A stretch of DNA of 63,242 nucleotides, filler included, from Klebsormidium nitens (Eukaryota > Plantae > Klebsormidiophyceae), in the NCBI GenBank assembly GCA_000708835.1. It is 7 parts of 7 records of this genome, joined end to end, with 100 filler letters (N's around TTAATTAATTAA, not from the genome) between each part and the next. Parts side by side here need not be neighbours in the genome. Positions count along the whole stretch, not along the records: positions 36,110 to 47,325 come from DF238147.1; 6 more parts are not named here. One strand, written 5' to 3'. Positions 35,951-47,426 of the stretch are shown one piece after another; position 1 is the stretch's first letter; each line of letters starts with the position of its first letter. The notes under the pieces were generated by a model. It ran no database searches, was not told where the DNA came from, and was given only the letters and a program-made list of their open reading frames with translations. The position numbers and the translations under genes are program-made.

Positions 35951-36189
35951 GCTGAAGCAGGTTTACTCACAGAAAGTATTCTGTCAGCCGCTCGAAAGGG
36001 CTCGAAGCCNNNNNNNNNNNNNNNNNNNNNNNNNNNNNNNNNNNNNNNNNNNNTTAATTAATTAANNNNNNNNNNNNNNNNNNNNNNNNNNNNNNNNNNN
36101 NNNNNNNNNGGAATAATGCATGACTATGAATTCCATACATAACCATACAACGTATTCATGTAGTTTCATCGCTTGACAATAAACACGAG

Positions 36190-38030
36190 CGCTCCAAAGT
36201 ACCGAGCCTAATCAGATGCCGAGCCTATATCGCATGACAATGACGCAAAATGATTGGGTCAACTCGTTATCTTTCCACTGACGATATCGAACCTCCTGAT
36301 CACTCACGAGGTTCGCGACCACTGTAAACGGCCATTTCTGTACTAACCGAATAATAATGCTCGTATGTCGCTGGTACTCATCCCGGTCCGTAGCTTTGAC
36401 AGACACAAGCTGCTCCCCAATCATCATGTTAGCATGATTCTAGATAGCCAGATTGGGAACCCGGTCCTCGATGGCCGGGGCTTTCCTTCCCCGTCGTCCG
36501 GCACAACACTCAAGTTCCTAGTATCAGGGTCAATAACCAACTGCTGGGAACCCAAACCAGACTGAGCAGGGGATCCACGAAAAACCGGGGCAAAAACGCA
36601 TCAGTGGAAAAGGCCCTGGGGGCTTAAAGTGAGCCGTATAGTTGTGATGCAGAATACCTGGGCCCACACCAAGGGGTGCAGCGGGGTCGAAGGCGCCGCA
36701 GGTGGGCTGTCCCGTGCGAGGCCCCTGCCACGTGTCGCCCCCCGCCACGAAGAAGTTGTGCAGGGCCGAGTCCAAACCGGGCTGCCGACCCATGGTCGCG
36801 TTGGTGGGCATGCCTTGGGGAGAAGCACTCAGGCGGGAGAATGCTGAGGGCCGAGGGTCGAGCCGGTCAAAATNNNNNNNNNNNNNNNNNNNNNNNNNNN
36901 NNNNNNNNNNNNNNNNNNNNNNNNNNNNNNNNNNNNNNNNNNNNNNNNNNNNNNNNNNNNNNNNNNNNNNNNNNNNNNNNNNNNNNNNNNNNNNNNNNNN
37001 NNNNNNNNNNNNNNNNNNNNNNNNNNNNNNNNNNNNNNNNNNNNNNNNNNNNNNNNNNNNNNNNNNNNNNNNNNNNNNNNNNNNNNNNNNNNNNNNNNNN
37101 NNNNNNNNNNNNNNNNNNNNNNNNNNNNNNNNNNNNNNNNNNNNNNNNNNNNNNNNNNNNNNNNNNNNNNNNNNNNNNNNNNNNNNNNNNNNNNNNNNNN
37201 NNNNNNNNNNNNNNNNNNNNNNNNNNNNNNNNNNNNNNNNNNNNNNNNNNNNNNNNNNNNNNNNNNNNNNNNNNNNNNNNNNNNNNNNNNNNNNNNNNNN
37301 NNNNNNNNNNNNNNNNNNNNNNNNNNNNNNNNNNNNNNNNNNNNNNNNNNNNNNNNNNNNNNNNNNNNNNNNNNNCTGAGGGCCGAGGGTCGAGCCGGTC
37401 AAAATCGGAGGGGCGAGAAACAGGGGGCCCATCCTGGGGCTCCCAAACAGGCTGCACGGGGGGGGTGGCGGTCCAGAAATGCTCTGGCGCTGAACTACCC
37501 CCCTAAGATGGCGAAGCTCGACGTCCTTGGACGCACGCTCGGCCCGTGCCTGGGCTAACTGAAGTGTCATCGAAGGGTCCTCTACAGAAACGTGGGGGGG
37601 TCAAGAATTTCTACGAGGGGCCCCAAGGCTTGGCATCCGTGAATCAAATGAAACGCCCCCGCGAGAAATCGTGGCCTGCCCTCCATCAGCATGCATCATG
37701 GCAGCTGTAACTTCTGGGCAGGGCCAGTGGAATCGGTCTCACCAATTTGGAAGACCGGGGCATCGGGGCGCAACCGACGGGCCCCCCCCAGGTGGGAAGA
37801 GTGGGTTCTGCGACCTCCCCGACATGCCTGATGGGCGCGTCAGGGGTACGAAGCTCCTGCTGGTCTCCCACCAGGATGAGGGCCGCCCCCGGCATACGTA
37901 CAACCGGAACTTCGATCTCGTCCGGGTTGTCAAACCCATAGTCCAAGACCTCGTCTCCCACCTGGAAGTCTGTAGGGGAGATGTCCGGGCGTGGAATTTC
38001 GGCCATGGTGACAACGGAACGAGAAAACAA
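36190..38030 (-). mobile_element. Probable DIRS/Ngaro-type retrotransposon ORF1 (gag-like) fragment
   Basis: Pro-rich ORF1 across the gap, then DRDEYQRHTSIIIRLVQKWPFTVVANLVSDQEVRYRQW. This resembles the Y..I..L...W..V..YD..FR motif of YR-retrotransposon gag and the motif at ~62170-62310. No RT or recombinase visible. Confidence 0.45.
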
Positions 38031-39199
38031 TCTCTATGCTCAAGTTAAATTCAACTTGTAAGCAGAGTTTGAGAATGAGCTAGGTTTCTGGCGATCTCCC
38101 TACTTGAAACCTAGCAACTACACTAGGTGACTGCACTGGTCTTGAGCACTGCGTCGCCGCTGCTGATTGGGTAGCGATCCGCGCCTCCATGCATTGGCTA
38201 GACGTTGGCGCGTCATCGCGTAAGCTGTCCCGGCAGACATTACGTGCCATGGTGCGCTGGCGCAATACGCATGGGATTTCGTACCGGTACCTGAAAAAGG
38301 GACACGTGGGGCGAGAGCAATCTGCTTGCACGTAATTTGGCTCCGTTGAACGTGAGCCCTTGATTATCTTCGTCTAACTCTATAATCAAATACCAACGAG
38401 CTTGGAGTTGACGAGCAGACATGGTTTTCAAGAAAGTGCAAGCAGCATTGGTTGACAATACTGAATGCAAAGAAGTCTTTCTTGGGGCTCGAGAAAATCT
38501 TTCGAGGTGTCTTTTCAGCAAGTCAATTCTGAAGGCCGCTTACGACAATTCTGGAGCTTCTCTATTTTTTACTGAAAGTTGCATGGAGTTGCTCTGTAAG
38601 ATCTATCAGCTTATCATTCTGATGGGGCTATCTGAGCGCAGACATACAATCACGTCCAGCTTCTCAGCAGTCCTTGCTCTCCAGCTGGATGTGCAAGATG
38701 TACAACCTACTGTACCTACCTAGTAACCTAGGTATTGCGGTTTCTGGAGCATCCACGCGAGCCGCACATAAGCAGACCCTTTGAAGCATTGAATGGTAGC
38801 TAGGTCCCGACAGGCCTCAATGGTCCGCTGTCACGCATTTCAAACTTATATCGTACCTTTGGTGAATGGTAGGTTCGGTATGGGCACTCGACTACCGTAG
38901 TAAATAGGTTCTAATATAATATATATATGTCAGGTTGTTTCGCTAGTGGCCACTGGCAATCTGTACCGATCTATACCTATCTACCTATCTAGGTACCTGA
39001 TAGGTATCTGCCTGGCTTGCTCGGTGTACGATACCAAGATGGGTATCGGGACCGTAGGTACCAAGGCCGTACTGTCGGCTCCGGATCCAGGTACCTTAAG
39101 GTACGGTAGTGCCTGAGTAGGGTAACTAGGTACCTGCTTTCGTTACCGTGGGTACGCTTCTACCGCAACCAGTATCTGGCCAAGTGGTGGTTCTTTTGA

Positions 39200-40520
39200 C
39201 CGAGCACTTCTTGTCTACTGATCAGAGTCACAAAACGCTAGGGAAGTAAGATTTTCCTGGGCCGGGGACACCTCTGGCTCCGCAGAGCCAGAATTTCTCC
39301 AAAGAACCTACGGAATTCGCGGAGTTGTACAAAGTTTCAAGCAACTTCTGTGCAACCAACACGGGGACTTTACGGGTCTGTGAACTGCTTTCATTGGAAG
39401 GAGTGCGGTCCCGACGAGCGGAAATTTGCGGTTTGCGAACACGGTGCACGGCGATACTATACATGGACCAGGGTTGGCTTACTACTAGTGCAGTTCTTTC
39501 GCGTTACTACCACGCAGTACTCCATGAAACTGCACGGTCTGGAACCCGCGTACGTGATATGTGGTGCTGCTCAACTCGACAATCCACACCCCTTTGCACA
39601 CATCCTCATTGTGGCCCTACACCGTAAAAGCCACTCCGTTTGCACCGCCGCAAACTCTCGCCCCTTCGCACGGCTACTTGCGCGCGCGCTCTGCCTACAC
39701 AAGGCTTCTGTGTGGTCTCTCCTGCCGCACTTGCGACACTCTGTTACGCGGAACCTGCACTTTGCCTTCATGTGACCCAAGTGCTTTGCCACAACAACAG
39801 CACGTTGGCGGGTTTGAGCTCCCGCCTCCCACTTCCAAGCTTCTTTCCAGCTCGTATGAGCTTCCAGGGCCCTTCTCTGAGCTTAATAGCCACTTTACGC
39901 CGCCACCGCTTCATTTTCACCTAAAATCCCCTTCAAGGACCCCGCGTCAGCTCTCAGCTTTAGGTTCTGCTCTTTTTTGCATTAGCTTCGGCTGGATCTT
40001 ATCGAGGGTTAGCTATTTTTCTCCGAGCTCCAGAAATTCCAAAACGATGGCATACATCCCCTAGCAAACCTTTTAAAGCTCGCACGGCCAGCTCACCCTC
40101 TGTGACAATTTGTCCTGCCGCCTCCAAATCTAGCTAGAGCTCCCGGGCTTCTCCTTGGTATTCTGCAATGGCTTTCCGCTTTGTCAAACTTAGACCCGTC
40201 AGCTTTCTTCTAGCTGAATCATGCGCGCATCGCTCCTCTTATCAAAGACGGTCCTCCCAACTTCTTTCACGCTTTTCGTGGGTTCACCCTCAATCAACTT
40301 CACTTACACATCTTCCGTGTGAATCAGCATCAGCCCCCTTGCTTGGCTGAACTCTTTCCTTTCCGAGGACTTTGGCTCCTCTAATGCACACAACAGTCTC
40401 TTGTATGCTAGAAGCCCTCGGAACTTGGCCTTCCACGTTGACCAGTTGAGTCACCACAAAGTAGCGGGATCGACACTTTGTCTTCGCCATCTCAACTACA
40501 TCTTCCCTTGAACACAATCA
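39200..40520 (-). mobile_element. Degenerate Ty1/copia gag, protease and integrase N-part
   Basis: gag-like ..LTLDKIQPKLMQK..; paired knuckles HLGHMKAKC..CRKCGRRDHTEALC; protease remnant EWLLRCRATMRM (cf. WLLDSGATxHM); PTLVHV-like integrase start. Heavily frameshifted. Confidence 0.65.
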
Positions 40521-40611
40521 AGTCAAATCCTCCATTTCTCATATTTACACACTCAGCGGCGCGAGCGTTCAAATATCGCCCTTCGGACAACCATATTTGA
40601 AAGCTTGCGCT

Positions 40612-40689
40612 TGTTCGGTTTTATCTCGCTGCCACTTGGTCTACATTGGCGCCACTATAGCCCGAGTGGCAGCGCAATAAAATCTAACA
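40612..40689. repeat. 78-bp TG..CA palindromic LTR-like unit (copy 1, diverged)
   Basis: tgttcggttttatctcgctgccacttggtctacattggcgccactatagcccgagtggcagcgcaataaaatctaaca; homologous to copies at 41530-41607 and 41829-41906. Confidence 0.85.
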
Positions 40690-40690
40690 A

Positions 40691-40701
40691 TGGTATCAGA
40701 G
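40691..40701 (+). promoter_or_regulatory. tRNA-Met primer binding site following the 78-bp unit
   Basis: tggtatcagag one base after the terminal CA. Confidence 0.75.
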
Positions 40702-40708
40702 GAAGGTT

Positions 40709-42185
40709 CTCCCCCACGCACCAAGTATCCTATGCAATTTACATCTTCTTGCACTTCAAGAACTTTCCGGGTGCCAACGCTTTGGTCAAGATGTCCGCCT
40801 TCATGTCCTCCGTCTTGCAATACGTGAACTCGATCTCCTCCCGCGCAAAGTGGTGAATCACGTCGATGTGCTTCGATTGTTGCGAAGCGATCGGATGCTT
40901 GAGGAGCCGTATTGCCCCTTGATTGTCGCAATGAATTAGGACCGTTCCAAGATCCAACACGAGATCATCCCCGAGTTTGCGGAACCACAACGCCTCTTTC
41001 ACGGCGTTTCCGCGCTCATATACTCCGCCTCTACCGTCGAGACCGCCACCGTTGGTTGAAGAGGGCTCGACCAACTTACCGCTCCCACGTACATTAACAA
41101 GACGTACCCCGTTGTAGAACGCTTTGTGTCAATATCCCCCGCATAATCGTTGCAAAGCAGTTCGAAGACCTCGCCGCTCCCCCCGAACGTTATTCCGGCT
41201 TCCTCCGTCCCCGCCAAGTAGCGAACCACCCCAAGCGCCGCCGCCCAATGCGCCTCCGTTGGCGCACTCGTAGTGCGCACCAAAGAACCCACGGCTTGGA
41301 CAATGTCGGGCCGCGTGCACACGCTCAAGTACAACAATCTTCCAATGAGCTCGTTATGAGGGAGCCTCGCCGTGTCTAGCGGCTCACCCTCTTGCGTCAA
41401 CTTCTCCCCCGCCCCAAGGACGACCGAGACCGTCCGTGCGCCCGCAAACCGTGCCGCCCAAGAAGCCCCCCTGTGACCTTCTTTTGTGTGTCTTCAAAGT
41501 ACGCGCCTCCCGGTTGCGCGCCAACTCCATGTCAAGTTTTAATGCGCTGCCACTCGGGCTACACTGGCGCCAATGTAGCCCGAGTGGCAGCGCGTTAAAA
41601 CGTAAGAACCGGGATGACGTCACGGTGACGTCACCGGGCGGCCGAGTGGGCCGAGTGACCTGGGTTCGGATTCCAGGGGAAACAAGTTTGACGGCTGACC
41701 GCGCAAAAAGGTTGCCTCGTGTGGCCCGTAAAACGGAATGCCTGAGGGGGGGCGCCAGTTACTGATGGGTCGTAATGAGACGACGCCTGAGGGGATGGAG
41801 AGAGCCGGAGAATCCGGTATCCACATTTTATTAGGTTTTAACGCGCTGCCACTCCGGCTACACTGGCGCCAGTGTAGCCCGAGTGGCAGCGCGTTAAAAC
41901 TTAACACTCCATCCGGAGGAAGTAGGTCGCCTCCCCCAAATCGCGGACGTCGATCTTCTCCGCCAAGTGCGCCTTCGCCTTCGCAATCCGCTCCGCCCCC
42001 CGTGCCGCGACGAGAATGCCGTCCACCCACACAATGAGGTAAACCCGCTCCCCGTCCACCACTTCCGAAAAGAGCGCCGCATCCGTCAAAAACGTCACGA
42101 ACTCAAAGTTTTCGAGCTCCTCATTCAAGCGCGTGTGCCATTCACGCGGCGCTTGGCGCAACCCGTACAAGGTGCGTTTGAGAAG
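40709..42185 (-). mobile_element. Ty1/copia RT-RNase H fragment with polypurine tract, interrupted by a 377-bp insertion
   Basis: LKRTLYGLRQAPREW, LIVWVDGILV, DLGEATYFL, LIGRLLYLSVCTRPDI, TKRSTTGYV, AVSTVEAEY, IHCDNQGA..SKHIDVIHHF, ADILTKAL. PPT gcgtgggggag at 40719-40709. Confidence 0.92.
41530..41906. mobile_element. 377-bp TG..CA insertion (TRIM-like element or solo LTR) with palindromic 78-bp terminal repeats and 5-bp TSD
   Basis: TSD ctcca at 41525-41529 and 41907-41911; removing the insert rejoins the copia RT (YFLxMEL..). Terminal units at 41530-41607 and 41829-41906. Confidence 0.85.
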
Positions 42186-42919
42186 TGTTGAAACACAGCG
42201 TTGTTGGAAGTGATATTCAATAAATCGAGTTCACACAATGTATAGGAGTGTTCCGAGTCACGGCCTATGTCTAGGTCTACACTCCAGCCTTGTAGGCTCA
42301 GTGGACCGTCACCTAGTAAGTCCGAAAATTTCACTCTATACCGTACATCGACGGCTATCATCGAACCTACAAAATATCGACGGTGTTATCGCCAAGTCAT
42401 TCGGGTGTATGCTGTAACCCGTGCGCATTTAACCATGTAACCATTGCTACAAGTTACCAACGAGTTACCGTCGTCGTCGTGATCCTAAAACCAATCTCTT
42501 GAACGGGAGTTCGATGATAACCGGTTGTCAACGAGTTACCGTCGTCGTCGTGATCCTAAAACCGATCTCTTGAACGGGAGTTCGATGATAACCGGTTGTT
42601 AGCGGTTGGCGATTACATGCGCACGGGTTACAGCGTTACACCCGAATAACTTATTGAGATCACCGCCGTAATGAGTAAGTTCGATAATAGCCGTAGATAT
42701 TCAGAGATTTGCGCAAAATTTTCGGACTTGCTTACCCGGTCAACTGAGCCTATTAGGCTATCAGTGTAGACCCAGACTAGGAGTGTGACTCTATTTAAGC
42801 GAGTCTAGCATAGCACACAGACTGCATAGCTTTAGCGCCGCTAGACTCCAAACACTCGACATGCATTGTGTGACCTTGATCATTCAGTCATTCATTCCCA
42901 ACAACGCCGTGTTTCAACA
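42186..42919. repeat. 734-bp imperfect fold-back (long inverted repeat) bounded by TGTTGAAAC..GTTTCAACA
   Basis: Arm matches: tgttgaaacacagcgttgttggaagtga / tcattcccaacaacgccgtgtttcaaca; ggtctacact..aggctcagtggacc..aagtccgaaaattt / aaattttcggactt..ggtcaactgagcct..agtgtagacc; attcgggtgta..ctgtaacccgtgcgcat / atgcgcacgggttacag..tacacccgaat. Confidence 0.85.
42458..42599. repeat. 71-bp direct tandem duplication at the fold-back centre
   Basis: caacgagttaccgtcgtcgtcgtgatcctaaaacc(a/g)atctcttgaacgggagttcgatgataaccggttgt x2, one mismatch. Confidence 0.92.
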
Positions 42920-43077
42920 GAAACACCTAGGGTAATAGCTAGGCTTGAGCTAGGCTATAAGATTCGGACTCATGTATCAAAAGAACCGCATTCATTCGGG
43001 ACTAGTAGTTGTGCACTTGAAAGGCGCTTGCTTTCAACAGCGCCCTCTTCACACCCAAATGCTATAGGCACATAACC

Positions 43078-43882
43078 TGTTGAAACTTATCGTGAGGGAG
43101 TCGTGGTATACTTGATTTACTCTTCGCGGATCGTGTTGCCCGGCACCCATGCTCATCACTCATTAATGGTAGCCATGCATCCTAAGAGGACAAAGGAAGC
43201 GCCTCACAAGCGGCTTCTTTCTCTCCACAAACTTCTCTTGATTTTATGTATCACATTAGTAGTTTCCACCACCATATGTCGTACCGATACAACTAGGCTC
43301 ACAAGCCTAAGTCACACACTACTAGGCTCACTAGCCTAGCTCACAATACACTCAATGTAGCCTTCGATATCCTCATTTATGGCTTGCACTGACGGTCCTC
43401 TCAACCGCCTGACCTCTAGAACCGCCTAAAGGTTTAACCGTCTAACCGTCGTGCACGCGCATACTGGCGTTTACTACTTCAAATTGTATATAGGTCGTAC
43501 CCCCATTACAATGTAATTCGGTCGACCATGTAATGACCGAATCGTAACAAGCGGCGGCACGGATTTGAAGTGATTGTTTGATTGGGTATTGATGGTCTCG
43601 GATGCAAGTGTCCGAATCCGGTTTATCAAATCGAGTAAGCCGTCAGATTGGAATTGACGGGATAAGAAGACTAGTTAAAATGGTTCCAATTAAAAGTGGA
43701 AGCATTTCTGGTAAACCGTAGATCGGACTTCGACTCATATTGGCCGTGGATTAGTAGGGAGGGTCGGACTCCGCTGTAGGGGGTAGCTAAATCCGCAATC
43801 TAGCCATGACTTTGAACAATCTTAGGTTGTGTGTACTTATTTCTCCTGTTTGTGCTTACTCGAAAGGTGCTTGCTTTCAACA
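43078..43882. repeat. Possible solo LTR, TGTTGAAA..TTTCAACA
   Basis: Starts tgttgaaac and ends aaggtgcttgctttcaaca. The same right end recurs at ~43021-43039. No TSD found. Confidence 0.4.
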
Positions 43883-46800
43883 GGTCGAATGAGTCTAACG
43901 AATGCAACGTCGCACTACAAATGAATGACCTACTAAGTTTTCATTTAATGGAATATCCGCTATTGCAACACCTGGCACACAGGTAATTTGAGCACAGCAA
44001 TGGATCTGCGACTATCGAGTCGAAAGATCCAATCTCAATGTAAGATGGTCAACTGACATAACGCACAAGTTCGTGCCGACGAGTCGACCATCCGCGATGG
44101 GCAAAGGATCGGTGTCTTGATAACGATATTTTGCCATATAAGCTCGACCAAGTTGCAACTAGAGATTTCTCTATAGACCATGCTAAGCGGACGGTCTCAA
44201 GTGATTGTCAAGTGCTAAATTGAACGGCTGCACGTTGTAAGTGACAGTATTTTTGGCTATGCAAAATACGCCTATACAGCGCAAGTGCAAGCGCGGGTAG
44301 AATCGAGGACCAATGCGCGCATGCAACAAATGCTATAGCGCGCAACCGGTAGAGCTGCGCGCTTGCCATGTTTGGCTGGCACGCCGCATGAGAAAGCGCA
44401 ACGCGCTACTGGAGATAGATGCGATTGATAGCATTGAGCGTGACATTGGCAGGTGCGAACAAGAGTGCTCTTCAATAAAAAGACGTAAACTTGGCACACT
44501 TGAAATTTTGTGTATATCATCTTGCACGCTGGATTAATCAGATGCAGCACCCGAACTATAGTACACGCCTCAGTCAAAGCCCCAACATGCGAGACACATG
44601 TCACGTACGGGGGTCCTGGACTACGGAGTTTCACGCACTTTGGCGCGGTACCAGCTCGCTGGTACCCCGCCGGTACCATGTTGCGTCCGTGGTGCGTACA
44701 CGGTGGCACCATGAACGGTACGGTACAAGTTTAACATGGACAGTACGGTACCAGCAGACGAACAGCGCGCAAGTACTCGGAAGTTGCCCGGTATTGGCAA
44801 GCAATCCCGCAAAAAACGCTGCCTCTTCACAGATGAATGGGCTCTTCAGAAGTTGCCCCCCGGACACCCGTGCAGGCTACCCTCTGCTGCTGCACGGACT
44901 TGTCACTTCAGTGTGTCAGTGTGCCCAGGGGGCCGGTCCATAATACTCTAAGTCGGTGATAGGTACTTGCCCTAGTTTTACCCTAATACCTACGCGGTAG
45001 TACGAATACGGCACGGTAAAAATATCAGGTGTACCTAGGTACGGTACTCCACCATTTGCACCGTCATTGCGGAACTTGCTTTGAAGGTACCTAATTTGAC
45101 TTACGCCGAACGGTCCCATCCAGAAGCATCGCAACCGTTGAGTTGCCCCTGTGTTTGCCAATCTACGACTGATGTAGATGCTCAGATATACTCGATACAG
45201 CCTGCATGCCTTTCAATATCGTTGTGTAGGTACCACGGTACGTCGGTAGTACCCGTACAGGCAGCTCACTCACCGAAAGCTCCCTTGTCAGCCTTGTCTT
45301 CAGCTTCCGACCACCTTTCTTCTTGCTGCAGATTGTTAGCTTTGCTGTAAGTCTTTGATGTAGAGGCTGGCAGCTGTCATATATGCAATATATGCATGGT
45401 CTCTTTAGAATTTGTGGCTTCGCACTACCTAAGTACCCAGCTTAGTAGGAGTCATGGCTTGAAATAACAGCTTGCAGCCTTTACCACTCAGCAACTCAGA
45501 TCGAAGGGTCAAAATCATACCCTATGTCCAACTTACCAGCTCCATGCAGCTCTGTGCATGAAATGGGGGAAGCTGAGAATCGTCAAGTGAGTGGCATTTG
45601 AAATTGAGTAGCTTACAAACTTAACTCAGATGATTTTCTCCGGCACAAAGAGGAGCTTCACAACGTTCACCATTGTCATCCAATGCTCCTTGCAACTTTT
45701 TGGAGACCCGCATGAATGCATAGGACTCGACTACGGCAGCCATTCTTGTGAACTTTGAGAACGATTCTGCTGCTTGGTAACCATGTTTGCTCGCGATCTC
45801 CAAGCTCCCTGTTCGGAACCCTAATTTTTGGTACGCAGCCAGTGCACTGTCACTTCGGTCCCACCGTACTGGCTCCGTACTTCCAACCCGGAGCCATCGT
45901 GGTACCACTTTCAAAATTGAGAGTTCCGTACGGTAATCATCGGATTAATACCGCGGTGGTACCGCGCTGACACCCCGCCGAATCGGCTGCAGGGATGAAA
46001 GGGCGAATCCCCGACTCCCACCCCAAAGTCGCATGTCTGAGCTCAAACAAGAGAGCGGGATATCTGGCGGCGTGACTCGATACAGAGAATTCCGACGCAA
46101 GCAGATCTCACTTCTTTTTTTAGGATATCACTTTTATTGTAGACCTTTACAGCATTTTCTAGGCATCTGCTACGATTTTCGGTTTAGCTGAGCTAAGTTT
46201 TGCTTGCTGAAGTTTAGCTAAAGTTTAATGAAGTTTTGACGTCATCCTTGGCAAGAATTGAGCTGACCTCAGCAGGTTTGACATGTTTGACACACGGAGC
46301 AATCCGAGCACGACCCTGCTTCGTCGATTCAATCGTGTCCGTCCATCTGACAGTCTGTAAATCCAGGAGCACACGTGACCAAATGTTTGACGTCAGCTAC
46401 AAGTTGTTGAGTTTTGCTTCGAACTTGCAAGACCCTAGCGAGGTTTAGCTAAGCTATTTCTCCAATCGTAAAGGATGCCTAAAATCTGCTGTAGTAAGGA
46501 CGCATTACGAACACAAAAAGTTGGTTGCTGCAAAAAGATCTCTACACGCAGCAAGCAGATTGTTGGTTGGCCCCCAACAAGGGCAGACACATCGCAAGGG
46601 CGGTCGCATCAAGCAACCCCTAGAACTGTACGGAAACTTCCTACGTACAATGACGTAGAGCGCGTGATGTCTCTACGGGTCAAGTGGGAACTTCATGCCC
46701 GTGAAACGGCACAATGAATCCTTCACAGGGTTCTCACTACTTTGGTTATTTGGCCTATGATTGGGCTCAATCGAAATATTGGTCCGGATGGATGGTACGA

Positions 46801-47426
46801 GACCCGTGGATAGGAATGGACGGTTCAACCGTGCATTTGATGGAACCTTTGCAAGTATTTGGTCATTGTAAACATCGTTGTACACGTTGGAATCTTTTGG
46901 CATAGTGGGCCTAGTGGAAGCAGGAATTTCTCGAACTCGATGGTGGTGAAACACTCGGATCGAGAGGGTTGTAAGAGAAGGAAGCCGCTTGAAGGGCGCT
47001 TCGTGCGTTCCTCTTTGGACGCATGGCTTCCCAAAAAAGGGATAACGAGCATTATCTCGGCACTACAATGAAACCAACACCGAAGTCACTATTGCACTAT
47101 CCTAGCGAGTAGTTTCAAGAGCATTTGGCCCGCCAAAGTTTGCTTAAGTTTCGAGGTTTTCGGTCTATACAAAGCTTGTAGCGGTCCGGTAACTGATTCA
47201 CAATCTGTAATAAAGTCTCCGGCTTTGGCCTTATGTCAATGCGCAAAATCGGCCGCGCGCGCTCGACGACAGCCCGTCGAGCTATTACTTAGCACATGAA
47301 TTTCAATATTGAGCTACAGTCCGCCNNNNNNNNNNNNNNNNNNNNNNNNNNNNNNNNNNNNNNNNNNNNTTAATTAATTAANNNNNNNNNNNNNNNNNNN
47401 NNNNNNNNNNNNNNNNNNNNNNNNNC

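Follow-up and report, generated by a model that had tools for sequence, protein, structure and literature searches.

A 377-bp TG..CA insertion with self-complementary ends in a Ty1/copia fragment of Klebsormidium nitens

The window, a 63,242-nt stretch of Klebsormidium nitens DNA joined from seven parts, includes at positions 36110–47325 an 11,216-bp, repeat-rich scaffold (DF238147.1) of a short-read-era assembly, in which a 377-bp element interrupts the reverse transcriptase (RT) frame of a degenerate Ty1/copia retrotransposon. The element carries at each end a 78-bp palindromic unit, here called P (P_L on the left, P_R on the right), around an interior x, giving the arrangement P-x-P, and a third P unit occupies the long terminal repeat (LTR) position of the neighbouring copia; this one scaffold supplies all of the evidence on P units. 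The element is best read as an LTR-type copia derivative with a 78-bp palindromic LTR module rather than as a new kind of element. Specifically, it is probably an integrase-inserted, non-coding derivative of a K. nitens Ty1/copia lineage whose LTR either is the 78-bp palindrome or is built from it, a reading based on the precise insertion into copia RT with a 5-bp target site duplication (TSD), the near-consensus termini, and the position of P in the neighbouring copia beside a primer binding site (PBS). The element would have arrived as reverse-transcribed DNA, with a copia-type integrase attaching at the outer TG..CA ends of P and cutting the target with a 5-bp stagger, and the enzymes would presumably have been supplied in trans. 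Coordinates are collected in Table 1.

The insertion and its palindromic ends

The element begins with TG, ends with CA, and is bordered on either flank by an exact 5-bp ctcca. For a colinearity test, it was deleted together with zero to nine flank bases and the resulting translation was aligned to the related protein P0005; the score was maximal at exactly 5 flank bases, where the junction alignment is free of gaps and stops (382 nt removed). Because RT colinearity returns only when the element plus exactly 5 nt is deleted, a precise insertion with a 5-bp TSD is established, and the 377-bp unit is a genuine mobile-element insertion. The termini, the flanks and the colinearity peak at 5 nt thus bear out an earlier note on this DNA, which had described a 377-bp TG..CA insertion with a ctcca TSD in copia RT. 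The outer heptamers, TGTCAAG and CTTAACA, fit the LTR short-inverted-repeat consensus TGTTRNR..YNYAACA with a single departure, a C at position 4. The element is shorter than 1.5 kb and non-coding, and the open reading frames (ORFs) passing through it have no protein-family match.

Compared as inverted repeats, the terminal 79 nt on the two sides show 92% complementarity; compared as direct repeats, they show 94% identity. Each end also forms a palindrome of its own, with arms of 33–37 nt that are 94–95% complementary and a loop of 0 nt; as each 78-bp end is a near-perfect palindrome, P_L and P_R count simultaneously as direct and as inverted repeats of each other. This had been proposed in the earlier note and holds, with the refinement that the unit measures 78 bp and the interior 221 bp, excluding 1-nt spacers. 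Folded alone, P_L reaches −56.4 kcal/mol (z −11.4) and P_R −61.8 kcal/mol (z −11.8), with none of 200 shuffles as good, and the fold of the whole 377-bp element has a z of −14.1.

The two units differ at 6 positions when aligned as inverted repeats and at 8 when aligned directly, and the terminal 14 nt account for five of the eight direct differences (Fisher p 0.004). TG and CA are missing from the inner repeat ends. Outer end resembles outer end, inner end resembles inner end, and all four terminal heptamers vary more than the palindrome core. Core arm mismatches number one or two per unit in the young element and eight in the old unit of the host copia, a pattern consistent with decay from a perfect palindrome. 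The earlier note had also proposed looking for compensatory changes between the arms. Comparison of the host unit with the element units reveals, among 37 pairs, a single double substitution (A-T to T-A), which does not exceed shuffles, and the covariation is not significant with three copies only.

Three other identities for P were considered and set aside. Rfam microRNA models (mir-431 and others) match P at 33 bits against gathering scores of 56–100, which reflects a generic hairpin shape only. A junction of the retroviral LTR-LTR circle type does not fit, as the centre of P is GGCGCC rather than CA|TG, and a free-standing 78-bp miniature inverted-repeat transposable element is likewise rejected, as the third unit has no TSD.

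Within the interior, a hairpin formed by two TGACGTCA octamers sits at the position expected of a PBS (−17.4 kcal/mol, z −2.55, 1 of 200 shuffles as good), and the 3′ half contains purine-rich tracts that resemble a polypurine tract (PPT) without abutting P_R. All five interior purine runs of at least 7 nt lie on the + strand; together with the location of the hairpin directly after P_L, this provides weak evidence for taking + as the sense strand of the element. Positions 41640–41677 additionally hold tRNA-like fragments, with box-A motifs of the GGCCGAGTGG type and a T-arm-like hairpin (CCTGG, a 9-nt loop, CCAGG). A tRNA or short interspersed element origin of the interior was rejected, neither ARAGORN (also in relaxed mode) nor Rfam giving a match.

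A third palindromic unit between copia pol and gag

The host of the insertion is assigned to Ty1/copia by its RVT_2 domain (E 8e-13), a C-terminal RNase H, and a gag with a CCHC knuckle. Its pol fragment ends at a natural stop (40739–40741, minus strand), and tblastn with P0009, P0005 and P0064 is colinear over pol. The gag fragment is colinear by tblastn with approximately residues 16–282 of more than 15 full-length copia polyproteins (best E 3e-5), and its zf-CCHC match is weak.

The third P unit, absent from the earlier note, begins 49 nt after the natural pol stop and ends 121 nt before the gag ATG (40490) on the minus strand. It is 82% identical to P_L and P_R (nhmmer E 2e-25), folds into a hairpin of −34.3 kcal/mol (z −5.8), and no TSD is found around it. 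The minus-strand order pol, P, gag is that found at the shared LTR of a tandem LTR-I-LTR-I-LTR array, a known arrangement, and, the distance from pol stop to gag start being just 249 nt, the junction LTR must be P itself or a longer LTR collapsed onto P.

Adjacent to the CA end of this unit lies a 12-mer, TGGTATCAGAGG, that matches the plant PBS for initiator tRNA (tRNA-iMet), TGGTATCAGAGC (PMC7215508), at 11 of 12 positions and is the sole such match in the window. By our own calculation, approximately 0.05 PBS matches with at most one mismatch are expected in 22 kb on both strands, so the site beside P is not attributable to chance. On the other side of P, the host leader contains a hairpin (40559–40610) that starts 2 nt after P (z −3.07, 1 of 200 shuffles as good), and no PBS remnant is detected in this leader (p 0.86).

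The location of a TG..CA-ended P between the natural end of pol and the start of gag, with a PBS 1 nt away, strengthens the LTR interpretation. The earlier note had made its interpretation depend on linkage of the unit to PBS, PPT or pol, and the third P stands beside pol, gag, a PBS and a purine tract. Its central idea of an element of the LTR-integrase type, either TRIM-like (terminal-repeat retrotransposon in miniature) or a solo LTR, therefore gains from P at the copia LTR position, while strict TRIM membership does not survive, as set out below.

The same host fragment underlies an annotated gene. An ORF at 40999–41400 on the minus strand has 33,221 homologues, the best being P0003 at 99% identity, which is GAQ92913.1 (KFL_011980020, 'hypothetical protein') of K. 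nitens itself. This gene model (40999–42170, minus strand) is built from the degenerate copia RT-RNase H fragment and splices the 377-bp element out as an intron. The intron is probably an annotation artefact, and the underlying 'gene' is a dead copia fragment. An introner-type origin of the annotated intron was rejected on our own reading of the sequence, in which the available GT..AG choices around the element leave the frame unrestored.

Table 1. Positions of the insertion, the P units and the surrounding copia features, counted along the window
Feature	Positions	Strand	Details
TG..CA insertion, 377 bp	41530–41906	+ (taken as sense)	P_L, 221-bp interior x, P_R
Left TSD copy, ctcca	41525–41529		Identical pentamer on both flanks; RT colinearity test
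Right TSD copy, ctcca	41907–41911		Identical pentamer; RT colinearity test
P_L, left 78-bp palindromic unit	41530–41607		Outer end TGTCAAG; inner end ..GTAAGA (no CA)
P_R, right 78-bp palindromic unit	41829–41906		Inner end TATTAGG (no TG); outer end CTTAACA
Interior hairpin	41609–41638	+	Two TGACGTCA octamers (41615–41622, 41626–41633); starts 2 nt after P_L
Purine-rich tracts, 3′ half of interior	41744–41812	+	End in GGAGAA (41807–41812), 16 nt before P_R
Degenerate, 5′-truncated Ty1/copia pol	40739–42205	−	Second RT half and RNase H, approximately residues 976–1341 of the full polyprotein
Purine tract of host 3′ untranslated region (UTR)	40707–40722	−	Ends in GGGGGAGAA (40707–40715), 17 nt before third P
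tRNA-iMet PBS-like 12-mer, TGGTATCAGAGG	40691–40702	+ (opposite to pol and gag)	1 nt from CA end of third P
Third P unit	40612–40689		TG..CA at both ends; LTR position between pol and gag
Leader between third P and gag ATG	40491–40611	−	121 nt, without PBS
Degenerate copia gag	39574–40490	−	Natural N-terminus to CCHC knuckle, with frameshifts and stops

Weighing the LTR-type reading and its alternatives

Two forms of the LTR-type derivative can be distinguished. The first, to which we give a very slight edge at something short of even chances, is a solo LTR of a family whose LTR measures approximately 377 bp and carries P at both ends; the single host P would then be the product of a P-by-P collapse or recombination. 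The length of 377 bp is ordinary for a copia LTR, no PBS is present in the interior, and TG and CA are missing from the inner ends. The divergent inner ends favour this form because a single round of reverse transcription that regenerates both LTRs should leave them identical up to and including their inner ends, an argument weakened by the greater variation of all four terminal heptamers relative to the core. The second form, which we consider almost as likely as the first, is an LTR-internal-LTR element resembling TRIMs and small LTR retrotransposons (SMARTs), in which P is the whole LTR. This form draws on the occurrence of P alone in the host LTR position, on a hairpin whose start lies 2 nt beyond P on the minus strand of the host and likewise on the + strand of the element, on a GGAGAA located 17 nt (host) or 16 nt (element) before P, on the restriction of interior purine runs to the + strand, and on the known existence of tandem LTR-I-LTR-I-LTR arrays. 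Strict TRIM membership is not supported, because no PBS lies beside the inner ends and these ends read TA.. and ..GA instead of TG..CA.

Several observations weigh against an LTR-type origin in either form. No PBS-like match occurs in the interior in either orientation (p 0.46–0.92), nor beside either inner end; the purine tract is separated from P_R by 16 nt; and the interior resembles neither the host leader nor the host 3′ UTR in sequence. The host junction is itself non-canonical, because the purine tract and P enclose the PBS, which is on the wrong strand, and none follows P, the coding-strand order being purine tract, inverted PBS, one T, P, and a leader without PBS. The parallels in layout between host and element were seen after the fact and are individually weak, and they carry limited weight. 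Only three P units are present on the 11-kb scaffold, where the whole 377-bp unit is not found as a paired LTR, and no further P copy was found elsewhere, in collections that did not include the K. nitens genome. Long terminal inverted repeats (TIRs) with TG..CA ends, moreover, also occur in integrase-related DNA transposons.

The searches for further copies were as follows. On the 11-kb piece, nhmmer profiles of the P unit and of its arm recovered only the three known units. Patterns of the P half-unit and of the gapped whole unit gave no match in JGI metagenome contigs, and the half-unit pattern gave none in IMG/VR and GTDB genomes. A protein query derived from the ORF through P, used at two lengths, returned no match, nor did a related copia protein used as a query in IMG/VR.

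The misplaced PBS suggests a small inversion favoured by the palindrome, since flipping the block 40612–40706 yields the textbook layout, with a purine tract abutting TG, an LTR, one A, a 12–16-nt PBS, a leader and gag, and since this block corresponds to LTR plus PBS, the content of plus-strand strong-stop DNA. Running counter to this idea, the element also has GGAGAA 16 nt before P_R, and a hairpin follows P by 2 nt in both host and element. By analogy with GalEa copia elements, which have a hairpin and no PBS, the order of purine tract, inverted PBS and P may instead be a layout specific to the family.

Among the alternatives to an LTR-type derivative, a miniature inverted-repeat DNA transposon fares best, and we consider it unlikely. 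P_L and P_R would here be 79-bp TIRs moved by a DDE transposase of the Ginger, TDD or GingerRoot type, and the third P would represent either a lone, decayed TIR or an independent insertion that happens to sit near copia pieces. The slightly better inverted than direct alignment (6 against 8 differences), the likeness of outer to outer and inner to inner ends, and the interior without a PBS are all in keeping with such an origin, as are the TG..CA (TGTNR) termini, TIRs of 40–270 bp and TSDs of 4–6 bp of Ginger1, Ginger2 and GingerRoot, the 5-bp TSDs produced by TDD-4 and TDD-5, and a second TG..CA palindromic element of 734 bp located 280 bp away. It is hard, however, to explain on these terms why the third P lies exactly between the end of pol and the start of gag, with a PBS 1 nt from its CA and no TSD. 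The 11-kb piece contains no transposase gene, and in this superfamily a 5-bp TSD is reported only for the Dictyostelium TDD elements.

A hairpin-dependent replicon appears decidedly improbable. In this scheme, the fold-back of P or the adjacent hairpin would prime in place of a tRNA, or the tRNA-iMet site would prime the plus strand, so that the minus strand would be hairpin-primed, the plus strand tRNA-primed, or both, and P-x-P would be copied whole and symmetrically with respect to orientation. The LTR hairpin, the hairpin after the repeat and the inverted tRNA-iMet site would together replace the canonical logic of PBS and PPT, a proposition with an equally slight chance of being correct. 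Whole-unit copying without regeneration of the ends would explain both the stable difference between inner and outer ends and the lack of a canonical PBS after the 5′ repeat. A hairpin does follow P directly in the host leader and in the element, at the position of the GalEa conserved hairpin; the gap from purine tract to P is 16–17 nt in both cases; the inverted host PBS stops 1 nt short of the repeat, at the point required for the end of a plus-strand primer; and hairpin priming has been proposed as the ancestral state of LTR elements. Each arrangement, however, is represented by one degenerate copy, no inverted PBS is present in the 16-nt spacer of the 377-bp element, and the hairpin of the element consists of two copies of a palindromic octamer that is possibly a transcription-factor site. 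The penultimate pair of P_R, moreover, is mismatched, a poor starting point for self-priming, and no compensatory evolution is detected.

A local duplication or assembly artefact at a palindromic repeat, involving no mobile element, is scarcely credible: palindromic repeats are classic misassembly sites and the scaffold is short and filled with repeats, but the exact TSD, the TG..CA ends and the RT frame restored by removal of 382 nt form a signature of transposition that a misjoin does not produce, and P_L and P_R are not a collapsed repeat because they differ at 6–8 positions.

Other repeats accompany the insertion on the scaffold. The 734-bp element (42186–42919) is almost wholly one palindrome, with arms 68–77% identical over approximately 560 nt, TG..CA ends reading TGTTGAAAC..GTTTCAACA, and a 71-bp tandem repeat in two copies at its centre (42458–42599); its left end abuts the end of the copia RT homology, and no TSD is seen around it. 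To the right of the copia fragment, an approximately 32-nt direct repeat ending in ..GCTTTCAACA (43009–43040 and 43850–43883) and a 71-nt inverted repeat of 79% identity (43168–43237 and 46962–47031) are present, and these short repeats hint at more nested elements with TGTTGAAA-type termini. An AT-rich island at 36530–37609 has a GC content of 0.30–0.35 against approximately 0.5 elsewhere and contains a 346-aa minus-strand ORF without a Pfam match and a perfect 30-bp direct repeat with copies 532 bp apart (36844 and 37376).

Significance and comparison with known systems

If an active copia lineage does have P as its LTR or as the end of its LTR, few known LTR modules would be shorter. LTR finders run with a minimum repeat length of 100 bp, a default setting, would miss elements of such a lineage. 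P reads the same on both strands, so ectopic recombination between any pair of copies, aligned in direct or in inverted orientation, can cause a deletion or an inversion, and RNA transcribed across P folds into a hairpin of approximately 37 bp. In a read-through transcript, this hairpin would be a likely Dicer substrate, an extreme form of the hypothesis advanced for Sireviruses. The earlier note had suggested that such ends might permit orientation-independent strand transfer or give rise to hairpin small RNAs. The strong-stop DNAs would likewise be self-complementary, with consequences for strand transfer and for the proposal that LTRs had a hairpin-primed ancestry; if the replicon were indeed hairpin-dependent, it would preserve to this day the hairpin-priming stage from which LTR elements have been proposed to originate. 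In the literature surveyed, no description of a self-complementary LTR was found, and only the palindromic LTR-LTR junction of retroviral circles turned up.

One formal parallel to the ends lies outside retrotransposons. In the inverted terminal repeats of parvoviruses, including adeno-associated virus (AAV), each repeat is itself a palindrome and the two ends are both direct and inverted repeats. The resemblance is an analogy only, with no homology implied: parvoviruses have single-stranded DNA genomes and replicate through a nicking Rep protein, and their ends have neither TG..CA nor a TSD. Ginger1, Ginger2/TDD and GingerRoot share with the K. nitens element the TG..CA (TGTNR) termini, TIRs in the 40–270 bp range and TSDs of 4–6 bp; none of their TIRs, however, is a palindrome in itself, their TSDs usually measure 4 or 6 bp, and they have no link to PBS, gag or pol. 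No Ginger-type element from streptophyte algae is reported in the literature surveyed.

Fungal GalEa copia elements likewise have no canonical PBS; their Conserved Hairpin Site immediately follows the 5′ LTR, in the same position as the K. nitens hairpins. No sequence similarity accompanies this correspondence; the GalEa LTR is not palindromic, and in K. nitens a tRNA-iMet site is present on the other side of the repeat.

TRIM/SMART elements such as Katydid, Cassandra and Zma-SMART (approximately 280 bp) resemble the K. nitens element in being non-coding and shorter than 1.5 kb, in having short direct repeats with TG..CA ends and a 5-bp TSD, in their presumed dependence on an autonomous LTR element, and in the known occurrence of LTR-I-LTR-I-LTR arrays. 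The K. nitens element differs from them in having no tRNA-iMet PBS after the left repeat, a purine tract 16 nt from the right repeat, and repeats of only 78 bp that are each palindromic and lack TG or CA at their inner ends. A Ty1/copia solo LTR is matched by the typical length of 377 bp (plant copia LTR sets average 220–373 bp), the near-consensus TG..CA ends, the 5-bp TSD and the nesting in another retrotransposon; the inverted repeats of ordinary LTRs, however, span a few bases, whereas here they extend over 78–79 bp and each is self-complementary.

Maize Sireviruses, also of the copia type, offer a further parallel, as their LTRs contain conserved, hairpin-forming, GC-rich palindromes that have been proposed as sources of hairpin small RNAs, and an inverted repeat surrounds their junction of PPT and 3′ LTR. 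In Sireviruses, these palindromes are 17-nt motifs repeated within the U3 regulatory region, whereas in K. nitens a single 78-bp palindrome forms the LTR termini and possibly the whole LTR.

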